Below are positions 3,101-21,700 of a stretch of 64,000 nucleotides of DNA, piece after piece. A program made the position numbers and the translations under genes. This DNA is from Ranitomeya imitator (Eukaryota), in assembly GCF_032444005.1 (NCBI RefSeq), contig NC_091288.1, positions 220,038,001 through 220,102,000 of the forward strand, in the 5' to 3' direction. The number at the start of each line of letters is the position of its first letter. The stretch's first letter is position 1. The notes beneath the pieces are model-generated. The model searched no databases, was not told the DNA's origin, and worked only from the letters and a program-made list of their open reading frames with translations.

Positions 3101-6100
3101 AGATGGGATGCCCCCCTACCATACATGGGGATCAAATATAGGAGCGCCGCAGACCTGGCTGCCGAAATCCAGAGTGAAGGGGCAGGCAGCCATGGCAGGA
3201 GGATAGTGGCCATGTAGTGGGGGAAAAAAAAAATAAAAAAACTAAAAAGTGCCCCATAGTATGAATATGTAACAATCACATGATGGCTATAAAAGTTATA
3301 AAAGAAAACATTTCCTTCAGTTGGTATAACGGACTGGTTACGAGAGCCATGAGGACGGCTCCCGTCCAGTCATGGCGGTACCACAGCACAACCCATGTTA
3401 TCGGGGGTGCAGGGGAGAAGTGCCAGGAAAAATCCTACTGCAGCCCCTTCACTATATGATCGTGGGGGTCATTGCAGATTGGCACAAAATATATATATCT
3501 CCATATAAAATGTGTAAAATCCCGCCCAGGCTTAATGACCCCAGAGAAGCCATCTACACGGACAGAGTGCAGTCAGCGTCTATTCGGATGTGTGTGATTA
3601 CAGCAGAGGATGGAACCAGTTTATTGGTGGCGACATGACGCAGAGGCGCGATTACAGAGCGTCCCATTGACGTGGCGAGTGCTGCAGGTGGAGCAGGACG
3701 GAAATTTGGGGCTCGCGTTACCTTCGCTTCAGGTTCCTCGTCCTCGTTCTTCCGCTTCTGGGGCGTCTTTCCATTCTCTGCGATGTCCGGTCCGGTGCCA
3801 TTAGCCACTTCGGCCTCCTCCTTTACCGGCTTGGGAATCACCAACCGCGTTTTGTCAACCCACTCGTTTTGTCGTCGATTCACTGCGAAAGGGGAAAACC
3901 AAACTTACAACATAATTTCACAATATGACTGTGGGCGTCTGACCCAGCCTGAACTTACCGTGCGGAGCTGGTATCTGTTGCCATCACGGGCGGTTGTAGC
4001 ACCATTGCCCCTTGGAGGCTGCAACAACTGCAAATATTCGGACTGAACCATTGAGAACATAAACTCATGGTACAAGGATCTTCTGGAAACGTCCGAGAAA
4101 AGAAGCAACTCGTCAAGGGCAAGACTGAGCACAAGAAGCAACGTGCCCGAAACCGAGAGACTTCAGAGCTGGATACTTCGATTAGAGGAGGAAGACAAAA
4201 ATGGCACCAGGAGCAAGCACCCCTGACCTCAGTGCGTAGCCGGCCTGTGATTAGAAGGCTGGCGGGATCGAGGGGCTCATAGCCTGTCCTGCAGCCCACT
4301 GATGGGAAAGGCATTGCAGGTCATCCACTCTATATGACTGGATACAGCGACCCTTAATGCCAAAAGAGGAAAAAAATAAAGTGGTTGATTTTGATAATTT
4401 TCCAGACTAAAGAATCAGTAATTAGCTCAGGTCGTGAAGAACAGAAGACACGGGTATGTCCACAAGGTCAGAGGCAGAGATGAAGCCTCGGTTATCAGAG
4501 TGTACAACTTTCTGCTGGACATTCAGGTGTGAAGGATCGTGTTTAGTCATGGACGACCGCTTATTTGTGACTCCTCTTTCCATGGAAGCGCTTGGCAATA
4601 AAGCTGCCAGAAGCCGGAGACATCAAGAGATAAGGGAAAGAGCGAGCCACACGGCATGACACAAGCGGGGCAAGTGTAGCCCCGGGCCCAGTGGACTCTT
4701 CACAGAGGTTGCACTGGGCCTGGAGAGAAGGAGGAACCAGAGCGGCTCAAGAGGCCACTGAAGTTCCTCATGTTAAGGAAACCATCCACAAGCAGGACAC
4801 TGATGAGCCTCTCCGGAGCGAGGCATCGCGGATCCAGGAATACGGCGCCTTACAAGGAACGGAGACATTACCTGAATTTTCACCCCCCATCCTTCTTTAT
4901 TATAGACACCGAGCCCCCGAGGATTACTTACGACCAGCGTAATGCACGTAGAACTCCTCCCGGCCCGCCTGCTTGTTCATTCGGGTCTTCACGATTTCTG
5001 CGTCATCTGGTAGAAAATAAAAACAATGCAAAAGACTCAGATTCTGCAGAACACAGGCTGCCACATTACAAAGCCATAACTTAATTTTTCCATCAATATG
5101 GCCATGTGAGGATTATTTTTTGAGGGACGAGTTGTACTTTTGAACGACATGATTGGTTTTAACATGTCGTTTACTAGAAAACGGGAAAAATTGTTTTTAA
5201 GTGTGGTGAAATTGCAAAAAAGTGCAATCCCACACTGGTTTTTTTGTTTGGCTTTTTTTGCTAGGTTCACTAAATGCTAAAACTAACCTGATATTATGAT
5301 TCTCCAGGTCATTACGAGTTCATAAACACCAAACATGTCTAGGATATTTTTAATAATAATCATCTTTATATAGCGCCAACATTTTCCGCAGCGCTTTACA
5401 GTTTCAAACACAAAAGTCATAAGTAACAACATTAACAATAGAATAATTAAAGCGAAATAAGCCGCCCCTGCTCGTGAGAGCTTACAATCTACAATGAGGT
5501 GGGGGAGATATAAAGTACAGGTGTGTATTTACAATAATGGTCCGGCCATCTTCAGGGGGTGGGGGATAGATGGAAGTAGTGAATGGGCTACACAAACATA
5601 AAATGACTGATTATTGAACCTGATAGGCCGCTCTGAACAAATGTGTTTTGAGCGAGCGCCTAAAACTATGCAAATTGTGGATGGTCCTAATATCTTGGGG
5701 TAGAGCATTCCAGAGGATTGACGCAGCACGGGAGAAGTCTTGGAGTCGGGAGTGGGAGGTACGGATTAGTGCAGAGGTTAGTCGAAAGTCATATGCAGAG
5801 CGCAGCGGTCGGTTAGGCCGATAGACAGAAATGAGGGAGGAGATGTAAGGGGGCCGCACTGTGGAGAGCTTTGTGGGTGAGAACAAGTACTTTGAATTGT
5901 ATCCTGTAATGAATGGGCAGCCAGTGTAACGACTGGCGAAGAGCGGACGCGTCCGAGTAACGATTAGCCAGATGGACGACCCTGGCTGCCGCATTAAGGA
6001 TGGACTGGAGAGGGGAAAGTCGCGTGAGGGGGAGGCCAATTAATAGAGCGTTACAGTAGTCCAGGTGGGAGTGGATCAGGGCGTCAGTGAGGCTTTTTGT

Positions 6101-18799: not shown

Positions 18800-21700
18800 A
18801 TGGACGATTCCGTTCCTGAGGAGCACAAGTCCATGTCGGCAGGAGCCGAGGAGAACCAGCACGACCCTCTCCCACACCAGGATGACAGCCTGGAGCAAGG
18901 GAGCGTAAAAGAGGAAGAGGACGACGAGGTCGGGTCTGGAGGAGAAACCGGGTCAGTCTCCGCAGGAGGGAGAGACCCAGAGGTGACCGTGGAGATCGGC
19001 GAAACCTACCTGTGCCGGAGAGCTGACAACACCTGGCGTAAGAAACCGTCGCTGCTGCTCACACTTGTATTTTATGCCAGGATACAAGTGACTAAGTCTC
19101 CAGCGGACGCTTCTGTATGTCTCTAGTGGACGCCTCTGTCTCTAGCGGACGCTTCTGCCTGTCTGTGGCGGACGCTTCTGCCTGTCTGTGGCGGACGCTT
19201 CTGCCTGTCTGTGGCGGACGCTTCTGCCTGTCTGTGGCGGACGCTTCTGCCTGTCTGTGGCGGACGCTTCTGCCTGTCTGTGGCGGACGCTTCTGCCTGT
19301 CTGTGGCGGACGCTTCTGCCTGTCTGTGGCGGATGCTTCTGTCTGTCCCCGTCCCCCTCGTACCCGTGCGGGTGTTACACAGCCGGCACCGCCTCTGACA
19401 GCAGCGACCAGAGCTAGAAGCCACGTCAGATTCCCTGCAGCTAAATCGTGGGCTGCCGATGCATTACCACGGCAGCTGGGAGCCTCACTGAGGCCGGTCA
19501 CCGCCATCTTGATACTCCCAGGAAGTCCGGCCACAGGCTGATCTTTAGGAGAGCGCTATTTTTACTATTACATTGTAGTTGTGAAGTAATCTCACGGTAT
19601 TTAGTAAAAGGGGGAGCTCATATAAAAAGTCACATCCCGGCCTAAGCCAAAAAATATTGAAATTAAAAGGCCAAATAGAAAAATACACATTCGAGTTCTC
19701 CACATTTAAAATTACAGTAAAAAGAAAATGGGGGGTGTTACTGCACTTCCCCAGAAATATAATAAAAGGTGATCCAAACATTGTGCGTGCCAATAAAGGA
19801 CATCAACTTGTCACAGAAACCAAAACAACAGAAAGATAGACGTTATGGATCTCGGAAATTGGCGACCTGTTATTTATTACAAAGCTCTGAATTTTAGATT
19901 ATCACCTCACAATGAACACTGGAAAAACTAAATTGTGTTTTTTCTCACCGCACTTAGAATTTTTTCACATTTTTCAGAACTTTATATGTCGTCATTCAAA
20001 ACTACAAAAAGAGAAAGCCGTCCTGCGAATGAAAAATAAGGTTATGGCTCTCGGACGGATAAAGTGCGAGCGCAAAAAACAGAGCTTAGTATTTGTGCAC
20101 GTGTCCTGGAGATCGGCGCGTCTTTACGGCACGGTAACTATTCTTCCATCTTGTTTCCAGACTCGGCGGAGGTGATCCAGTCTCGTCTGAACGAGCAGGA
20201 AGGCCGAGAGGAGTTCTACGTGCACTACGTGGGCTGTAAGTACCGTCACGTCTCCGCCCATCTCCTGGACGGCTGCGCTCCTCCACATTCTCCTCTCTCT
20301 TTCTAGTTAACCGGCGATTAGACGAGTGGGTGGATAAAAATCGCCTGGCGCTCACCAAGACGGCCAAGGACGCGGTTCAGAAGAACACAGACCAGTACTT
20401 GAACGAACTGTCCGAGCAGCCGGAGAGAAAAATTACTAGAAACCAGAAGAGGAAACACGATGAGATCAACCATGTACAGAAGGTGAAATCTGGCCCTCGG
20501 CACATAGCGCTTAATGTCCAGTGGTGGTAACGACCGATCGCCAGACGATCCTTCAACCATCATCCTGCTTCTATCTGTAATAGGAAGTCGGTCAGTCCAG
20601 CACCCGGCCCTGCAGGGGATGAGGTCCCCATAAAAATCGCACCTGTAGTGTTATAATCGCTGCCCCGCTTCTGCTGAAACGGACATTAATCCACTAATTG
20701 GGGAGAACTGTGCACTGGTTTTACATGAAACACCCTCCACTACCGGTGATGGTCTGCAGAGAACGCTCAGGCCAGCGCTGTCAGTCGCCAGTGAGGGAGT
20801 CAAGGCATGCAAAACAAGTGGGCAGAGCAGTGTCCTGAGCGTCTTGGCCCCTTGCAGGGTGCCCACTGAGTCTCTTGGCCCCTCACAGGGTGCCTCCCTG
20901 TGCCTCTTGGACCCCCCGTAGGGTGCCTCCCTGTGCCTCTTGGACCCCCCGTAGGGTGCCCCGAGTCTCTTGGCCCCTCGCAGGGTGCTCCTTAAGTCTC
21001 TTGGCCCCTCGCAGGGTGCCCCCTGAGTCTCTTGGCCCCCTCTGGGTGTCTCCCTGAACCTCTTGGCCACTCGCAGGATGCATGGAGCACCCTCATTAGT
21101 ACATTTAACCAGCAAAAAAAAAAAAAAGTTTTTCCAGATAAGACTCTTTGATTAGAACAATAACGGTGCGATTATTTTTGAGGCTTTGACCCCTACAAGG
21201 CCACGTGTTTATACTGTCAGTTTGGGCTGACAGACTTATCACAGGATCGGGCATGTTGTAATTCAGCATGCCCAATCCTTTTATTCTGTGAGCATCCAGT
21301 ACACCTGACATGGTCAGCTGCTCTGTATGAAATCGCCAGGTTTGGACGACCTCAGCTCAGTGTGTGCGGACATCGGGGTTCACAGGGAGATTCTGTCATT
21401 GGCAAGGTTGTGTGATCCTCATCCTACTTTCCATACGTTGCAGACGTACGCAGAGATGGATCCCACCACAGCCGCGCTGGAGAAGGAACACGAGGCGGTG
21501 AGTCCACGCCGGAACGTTAGGTGAATGCCTCTTGCTGTCGTATATATTATAACTTTTTTTTGTTATTGTTCAGATCACCAAAGTTAAATACGTAGACAAG
21601 ATCCACATCGGGAACTACGAAATCGATGCTTGGTACTTCTCTCCATTCCCGGAGGACTATGGGAAGCAGCCCAAGCTTTGGGTGTGCGAGTATTGTCTGA

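Follow-up and report, generated by a model that had tools for sequence, protein, structure and literature searches.

The barrel exons of an NF7-type TRIM gene in Ranitomeya imitator are probably an ancient inverted copy of the start of the adjacent kat8 gene

Two head-to-head genes with mirrored first exons

We analysed a stretch of 64,000 nucleotides from Ranitomeya imitator (NCBI RefSeq assembly GCF_032444005.1, contig NC_091288.1, positions 220,038,001 to 220,102,000 of the forward strand), hereafter called the window, with coordinates counted from its first letter. It holds an nf7-like gene of the TRIM family on the minus strand and kat8 on the plus strand, placed head to head with 5.2 kb from ATG to ATG. 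An earlier note made from the letters of this DNA had claimed that the first three coding exons of the two genes mirror each other and that the chromobarrel of NF7 is an inverted partial duplicate of the neighbouring kat8, a chimeric gene caught at its birthplace. The six exons were located as claimed, and their sizes, phases and split His codon were borne out.

Based on sequence reading and spliced translation, nf7-like coding exon 1 lies at 13607..13400 (minus strand, 208 nt), with the ATG at 13607. It encodes an acidic N-terminus and the first 18 barrel residues, and ends in phase 1 directly before a His codon. Exon 2 (5006..4932, minus strand, 75 nt, phase 1-1) encodes the barrel core, and exon 3 (3882..3722, minus strand, 161 nt, phase 1-0) the barrel end and a linker with a QKRK motif. 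On the plus strand, kat8 coding exon 1 (18800..19037, 238 nt, ending in phase 1) also encodes an acidic N-terminus and the first 18 barrel residues; it is followed by exon 2 (20161..20235, 75 nt, phase 1-1) and exon 3 (20307..20482, 176 nt, phase 1-0), the latter with the barrel end, a QKRK linker and a partial Tudor-knot match. GT-AG was observed at every junction of the barrel exons of both genes. The codon split by the first intron is in each case a His codon in phase 1, the QKRK motif of the third exon stands about 10 residues ahead of its phase-0 end in both, and the intron positions and phases (1, 1, 0) are identical. The barrels agree at 35/57 residues (61%), which is exactly the number counted by hand in the earlier note, and BLASTP of the two spliced N-termini gave 52/131 identities (E = 3e-33).

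Downstream of the barrel, the nf7-like gene continues with coding exon 4 (687..244, minus strand, phase 0-0), which was delimited by its splice sites and by Pfam matches to a RING finger (46.9 bits) and a B-box (38.8 bits), and with coding exon 5 (161..66, minus strand), the start of the coiled coil, delimited by splice sites and alignment to a related frog protein (P0166, see below). RING followed by B-box, plus this first coiled-coil exon, are the class IV TRIM features found in the window; the remaining part, with PRY/SPRY, is cut off by the window start. The remaining kat8 coding exons (21432..23504, plus strand), located by tblastn with the frog KAT8 proteins P0245 and P0241, encode the MYST zinc finger and acetyltransferase domain, and the last exon and its translation place the stop codon at 23502-23504.

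Identity of the NF7-type gene

The predicted NF7 N-terminus has 96.6% identity over 148 residues with 'nuclear factor 7, brain-like' from Ranitomeya variabilis (P0166); several NF7 copies from Dendrobates tinctorius were about 90% identical, as befits DNA of a dendrobatid frog. P0166 is colinear with window exons 1-5. It shares 90% identity with exon 1 (residues 1-71), 24/24 residues with exon 2 and 97% with the RING exon (residues 149-297), and its barrel is 100% identical to the 57 barrel residues of the window. This colinear alignment supports the joining of the three barrel exons to the RING exon, which the earlier note had assumed. Barrel and RING also stand together in the Xenopus laevis 'nuclear factor 7, ovary' (P0219) and the Pleurodeles 'zinc-binding protein A33' (P0225), both presumably first cloned as cDNAs, in which Tudor-knot and TRIM domains were found in a single chain.

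Judged by these alignments, the window gene is an orthologue of Xenopus NF7 and newt PwA33/A33. The domain order of Xnf7 and PwA33 (Tudor-knot, RING, B-box, coiled coil, PRY/SPRY) is that of the window gene's orthologue P0166, whose domains include TRIM_CC, PRY and SPRY, and nothing essential differs, except that the window holds the gene without its PRY/SPRY part and that dendrobatids have several tandem NF7 paralogues. NF7 proteins have no MYST zinc finger or MOZ/SAS acetyltransferase domain and carry RING, B-box and PRY/SPRY instead. NF7 is thus a protein that holds a KAT8-derived module yet falls outside the KAT8 family.

The barrel and its donor

Sequence profiles and a structure model both indicate that the N-terminal module of NF7 is a genuine Tudor-knot, or chromobarrel, domain. 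The Pfam Tudor-knot family (PF11717) matched residues 55-108 of P0166 with 55.2 bits against a cutoff of 20.8, and a Tudor-knot in NF7 was already present in the precomputed Pfam annotation. In the AlphaFold2 model, the module forms a core of four strands with a predicted local distance difference test (pLDDT) score of about 91. Foldseek with this model returned the mouse KAT8 barrel (1wgs) as best match and fly MOF (2bud) as next, followed by MRG2, Esa1 and MRG15.

Possible donors of the module were ranked by phmmer, using the NF7 barrel against all PDB sequences. Mammalian KAT8 scored 88 and 85 bits, Drosophila MOF 40 bits, TIP60/KAT5 28 and 26 bits, and Esa1, Eaf3 and MRG15 25 bits or less. 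The same ranking was obtained with a profile built from NF7/A33 rows only (KAT8 109, fly MOF 51, TIP60 33 bits). This ranking rules out KAT5, MRG15 and MSL3 as donors, and the assignment of the barrel to KAT8 in the earlier note is upheld. The NF7 barrel is far closer to vertebrate KAT8 than fly MOF is, which puts the origin of the copy within the vertebrate KAT8 lineage.

NF7 and the KAT8/MOF chromobarrels (PDB 1wgs, 7cmr, 2bud) have in common the fold, a conserved Tyr and Trp, and the three intron phases. They differ in that the MYST zinc finger and acetyltransferase domain are absent from NF7, and in fixed substitutions and net charge. The divergence was examined in 22 frog NF7 and 22 jawed-vertebrate KAT8 barrels. 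NF7 retains the tyrosines of 'YVHY' and the tryptophan of 'EWV', and at 28/57 positions the two groups share one conserved residue. At nine others each group has its own conserved residue (KAT8 to NF7: S20D, I24V, Q25K, S26T, E30K, E32A, F44L, L48Q, D49N), a pattern suggestive of a burst of change and then long constraint. Four of these substitutions alter the charge (Q25K, E30K, E32A, D49N) and are partly offset by S20D; NF7/A33 barrels have a net charge of +2 to +4 (about +3) and KAT8 barrels one of -2 to -4 (about -3). Such a shift would be compatible with an altered ligand preference, for example for nucleic acid.

Mode and direction of the transfer

The 75-nt, phase 1-1 exon was found in the NF7 genes of Ascaphus, Xenopus, Nanorana and the window, and in KAT8 of Xenopus, a lizard and the window. 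All seven exons have a 'cag|AT/AC' acceptor and the same donor position, with a GTAAGT-type donor that is GTGAGT in lizard KAT8. The intron phases described for the window are therefore conserved in the NF7 of other frogs and in Xenopus and lizard KAT8, a point that the earlier note had proposed to check. This comparison covered the introns of NF7 and KAT8 genes. Since all three introns are kept at homologous positions, the event was a partial duplication of genomic DNA and not the insertion of a processed copy; retroposition was rejected on the same ground, as the NF7 copy keeps its introns. The fusion stays in frame because exon 3 ends in phase 0 and the next TRIM exon starts in phase 0. The direction of transfer, from kat8 to NF7, is not in doubt: the barrel-plus-MYST architecture is common to flies and yeast, as mirrored in the PDB matches, and barrel plus TRIM was found only in amphibians.

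A derivation from another Tudor-knot gene (KAT5/TIP60, MORF4L1/MRG15 or MSL3) or from a processed kat8 transcript, with the likeness of the exons being coincidental, is hardly credible. One fold and a 'YVHY...W' core are indeed common to all these domains, but the 88 bits of KAT8 compare with 28 or less for the other candidates, and three introns at identical positions and phases exclude a processed copy.

Between the two genes, the sole inverted repeat seen at the DNA level pairs 4925-4988 with 20179-20242 (64 nt, 80% complementary) and consists of the 3' part of exon 2 and the donor site. The window barrels of NF7 and KAT8 are separated by 0.29 nonsynonymous (dN) and about 1.2 synonymous (dS, saturated) changes per site, with 56% identity at third positions. 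Together with the restriction of the repeat to exon 2, these values speak against both a recent event and continuing gene conversion. Recent gene conversion between the two barrels was also considered as an explanation in its own right and rejected, given the dS of 1.2 and the third-position identity of 56%.

Age and distribution of the fusion

More than 30 frog genera, among them the early-branching Ascaphus, Bombina and Discoglossus, have proteins that combine a Tudor-knot with RING, B-box and PRY/SPRY. Barrel-TRIM proteins were likewise found in the salamanders Pleurodeles and Lissotriton and in the caecilians Rhinatrema, Microcaecilia and Geotrypetes. The occurrence in all three orders means that the fusion predates crown Lissamphibia, a group roughly 300 million years old. 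The idea of a young gene caught at its birthplace thus did not hold, given a fusion present in three amphibian orders, a dS of about 1.2 and the loss of non-coding similarity: the picture of a birthplace is right, and 'caught' in the sense of recent is wrong.

In a maximum-likelihood tree of barrels, frog NF7 and salamander A33 fell into one clade (support 94/92), whose stem measures 0.49 changes per site; this supports a single origin of the NF7/A33 barrel as far as these sequences go. The stem attaches to a KAT8 polytomy that includes sharks. The tree was built without an outgroup, KAT5, MRG15 and invertebrate MOF sequences being absent from it. A Tudor-knot phylogeny had been suggested as a check in the earlier note; the tree gave an NF7+A33 clade joined to KAT8, but settled neither its point of attachment nor its date. 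Word-indexed homologue searches with the barrels of two frog NF7 proteins matched only amphibian NF7/A33 and no KAT8, and KAT8 homologues were reached only through an alignment that included the kat8 exon pieces of the window.

A giant panda record named 'zinc-binding protein A33' (P0232, UniRef A0A7N5K5L9, Ailuropoda melanoleuca) was considered as a mammalian orthologue and rejected. Over 492 residues it shares 91.7% identity with the A33 of Pleurodeles waltl, and it is almost certainly salamander contamination or a mislabelled record.

Some barrel-TRIM proteins are unusual. In the caecilian A33 models, an unrelated N-terminus of 24 residues replaces the exon-1 strand, and exon 2 resembles KAT8 more than the frog exon does. 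The A33-like protein P0096 of Lissotriton helveticus and P0303 of Gastrophryne (308 residues) are highly divergent paralogues. The Lissotriton P0096 barrel has a net charge of -8 and is matched by BLAST to KAT8 in preference to NF7; it sits on a long branch, where its tree position is unreliable.

Genomic neighbourhood in other species

In X. laevis (locus L003), NF7 exon 1 lies at 1489..1268 on the minus strand and KAT8 exon 1 starts at 10001 on the plus strand, again head to head and 8.5 kb apart, with a trypsin-like gene downstream of kat8. Because this arrangement matches that of the window, the pair has been adjacent since at least the common ancestor of pipid and neobatrachian frogs. Synteny of kat8 and nf7 had been named in the earlier note as a point to check across amphibians: the inverted adjacent pair was recovered in X. 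laevis. At the lizard KAT8 locus, the exon structure of kat8 is the same and the trypsin-like neighbour is present, and no TRIM or barrel exon was found in the 10 kb upstream of lizard KAT8.

In Pleurodeles, kat8 and A33 are located on one chromosome of 1.56 Gb, more than 10 kb apart. The Pleurodeles waltl KAT8 gene spans about 564 kb and the A33 gene 8.5 kb, a striking contrast in intron expansion between parent and chimera. For Ascaphus, the contig with NF7 covers only 2.3 kb of upstream sequence. Another TRIM gene lies upstream of one NF7 copy in Nanorana. Several frogs have tandem NF7 paralogues, all of them barrel-bearing, and in Dendrobates several copies lie on one contig.

Proposed origin and its alternatives

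Considering these observations as a whole, we conclude that the first three coding exons of NF7 are probably an ancient inverted copy of the start of the adjacent kat8. We propose that the first three coding exons of kat8, with the acidic N-terminus, the chromobarrel and the basic linker, would have been partially duplicated at the DNA level, and that the copy would have been placed inverted beside kat8. The copied third exon, with its phase-0 end, would then have been joined by splicing to a RING/B-box exon, likewise of phase 0, in a class-IV TRIM body. Such a fusion would be older than the split of frogs, salamanders and caecilians and would have been kept under purifying selection, with the NF7 gene staying beside its parent since the ancestor shared by Xenopus and neobatrachian frogs, if not longer. 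The copied barrel would have kept its fold and the conserved Tyr and Trp while fixing nine substitutions, by which its charge would have turned from negative to positive.

A number of points weigh against this account. No non-coding similarity was found between the nf7-like gene and kat8, and the junction of an inverted duplication is left without such proof. The head-to-head adjacency is verified in two anuran lineages only, and kat8 is not listed within 10 kb upstream of NF7/A33 in the gene lists of Bombina, Discoglossus, Rhinatrema and Pleurodeles; these lists came without sequence, and in genomes so large they do not amount to a negative. From sharks to mammals the KAT8 barrel hardly varies, so the tree can neither place nor date the branching of the copy. 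No protein with a Tudor-knot and a RING was found outside amphibians, in searches that were non-exhaustive and saw no lungfish. The caecilian A33 models (P0227, P0228, P0229) contain the barrel parts from exons 2 and 3 and none from exon 1, which reflects either a truncated barrel or a missed first exon. Finally, the one mapped determinant of PwA33 loop localisation is the B-box, and not the N-terminus (PMC2120627).

The absence of kat8 within 10 kb of NF7 in the Bombina and Discoglossus gene lists, and the presence of multiple NF7 copies among other TRIM genes in several frogs (Nanorana, Dendrobates), would also fit a kat8-derived copy that arose or was inserted elsewhere, for instance in a TRIM cluster, and reached its head-to-head place by later rearrangement. 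We consider this quite improbable. The arrangement is common to Xenopus and a dendrobatid, and it is very improbable that a derived gene should meet its own parent by chance in the exact divergent orientation.

The barrel might also derive from kat8 by an event older than amphibians, in an early sarcopterygian or before, with later loss in amniotes and in the sampled fishes. The attachment of the NF7 stem within a KAT8 polytomy including sharks leaves room for this, and sharks have A33-like TRIMs, though without a barrel. Moreover, at the 'GLNRR' site NF7 and fly MOF share Leu where all jawed-vertebrate KAT8 have Phe; these two residues, however, differ by a single nucleotide change. Against so early an event stand the restriction of Tudor-knot plus RING proteins to amphibians in the searches described, the empty upstream region of lizard KAT8 and the dismissal of panda A33 as a salamander contaminant, and we regard it as unlikely. 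A copy of the kat8 start made beside kat8 before the amphibian orders diverged remains the explanation that we prefer.

Intergenic interval and putative promoter

Directly upstream of nf7-like exon 1 lies a CpG-rich interval of about 460 bp (13608..14071, unstranded; CpG observed/expected 1.0-1.15), which we annotate as a putative shared bidirectional promoter. It contains a perfect GCGCATGCGC at 13726, YY1-like consensus matches at 13776 and 13832 and an ETS-like match at 13876, so that NRF1-, YY1- and ETS-like matches all fall within it. For kat8, a GT donor is found at 14072 and a splice acceptor 16 nt ahead of the ATG; a similar acceptor is present in Xenopus and absent in the lizard. This suggests a putative non-coding first exon of kat8 within 13608..14071, ending at the 14072 donor, with start sites that would lie in the same interval. 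A 5'-untranslated region (5'-UTR) intron of nf7 ending 2 nt before its ATG was also considered and rejected, since the only upstream donor gives an intron of 38 nt and other frogs are without the acceptor.

The earlier note had included the kat8 promoter in the duplicated segment. No similarity was found between the two flanks, and a single CpG-rich interval is common to both genes; duplication of the promoter itself is thus not supported. One bidirectional CpG-island promoter driving both genes would be the simpler reading. Most of the putative kat8 5'-UTR intron is filled by a 41-bp tandem repeat (about 39 + 6 copies, 92% matches) at 14164-15771 and 15958-16186.

Possible function of the barrel

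Since the early 1990s, work on Xnf7 and PwA33 has dealt with them as maternal nuclear proteins of lampbrush loops and, for Xnf7, as an APC/C inhibitor (APC/C, anaphase-promoting complex/cyclosome). Xnf7 is described as a RING ubiquitin ligase and APC/C inhibitor (PMC2171901), and PwA33 is reported on lampbrush loops, for which an intact B-box is needed (PMC2120627). The abstracts, term-search hits and reference lists of the Xnf7 and PwA33 papers make no mention of an N-terminal barrel; the domains described in the searched papers are only RING, B-box and retention domains.

By analogy with MOF, we hypothesize that the barrel contributes to RNA or chromatin targeting. It would give the ligase a MOF-like contact with nucleic acid or nucleosomes, and so help to place it on nascent-transcript loops and chromatin. 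A further-reaching idea, which we put forward as doubtful, is that the barrel was re-tuned and then frozen for more than 200 million years as a reader of nascent RNA or nucleosomes that places the ligase at the same chromatin or RNP sites as KAT8 complexes. Co-expressed from one bidirectional promoter, the pair could then act in oocytes and early embryos as a writer/antagonist module specific to amphibians.

Relation to known chimeric genes

TRIM5-CypA of primates and dm-W of Xenopus are chimeric genes that arose by partial duplication or exon capture. In zebrafish ftr06, a C-terminal chromodomain exon was inserted, as described by Boudinot et al. (2011) in a study of domain gains in fish TRIMs; this insertion is the closest published case, and a different one (PMC3137616). 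NF7 resembles TRIM5-CypA, ftr06 and dm-W in that a new domain was joined to an existing gene body through an intron. Unlike in these genes, the module of NF7 is N-terminal and multi-exon with its introns kept, appears to have been copied inverted from an adjacent gene, and is old and has been conserved throughout a whole vertebrate class.

The gene and its Tudor-knot annotation were known. Full-text literature searches found no paper on a KAT8 link of the NF7/A33 N-terminus or on the head-to-head arrangement, and we regard the KAT8 origin and this arrangement as new to that extent. The case is a well-supported new example of a known process, the birth of a chimeric gene by partial duplication beside its parent, and opens no new class of mechanism. 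It offers a concrete origin for an amphibian-wide chimeric gene and a source for a domain of a long-known oocyte protein, together with a testable hypothesis for how the NF7 ligase is brought to RNA or chromatin. It is also an unusually clean textbook case, with parent and offspring still adjacent and with exon phases that explain the in-frame fusion.

Repeats and mobile elements in the window

The first intron of the nf7-like gene is rich in repeats. Within 11510-13382, a 19-bp tandem array (about 78 copies) begins right behind the exon 1 donor, and 71- and 92-bp arrays lie at 11510-11816. The last ~20 nt of nf7 exon 1 and its GTGAGT donor recur inside the 19-, 71- and 92-bp arrays, and these copies of the exon end form several potential decoy donor sites. 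A near-perfect nested palindrome at 8727-9548 in the same intron, with arms of 159, 142, 66 and 51 nt that are 92-99% complementary, looks like a foldback or miniature inverted-repeat transposable element (MITE). Over 2 kb of the intron (6001-8000), the guanine-cytosine (GC) skew is very strong (+0.48), presumably from a strand-asymmetric repeat. In kat8, a 23-bp array is located at 19103-19347, just past coding exon 1.

Further along the window, an open reading frame of 506 amino acids at 42977-44497 (minus strand) resembles a reverse transcriptase of the long interspersed nuclear element (LINE) type. Three long uninterrupted open reading frames of 239, 698 and 660 amino acids at 46735-51891 (plus strand) resemble gag, protease/reverse-transcriptase and integrase, as in a retrotransposon of the Ty3/gypsy type. 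Both labels are taken from the translations.

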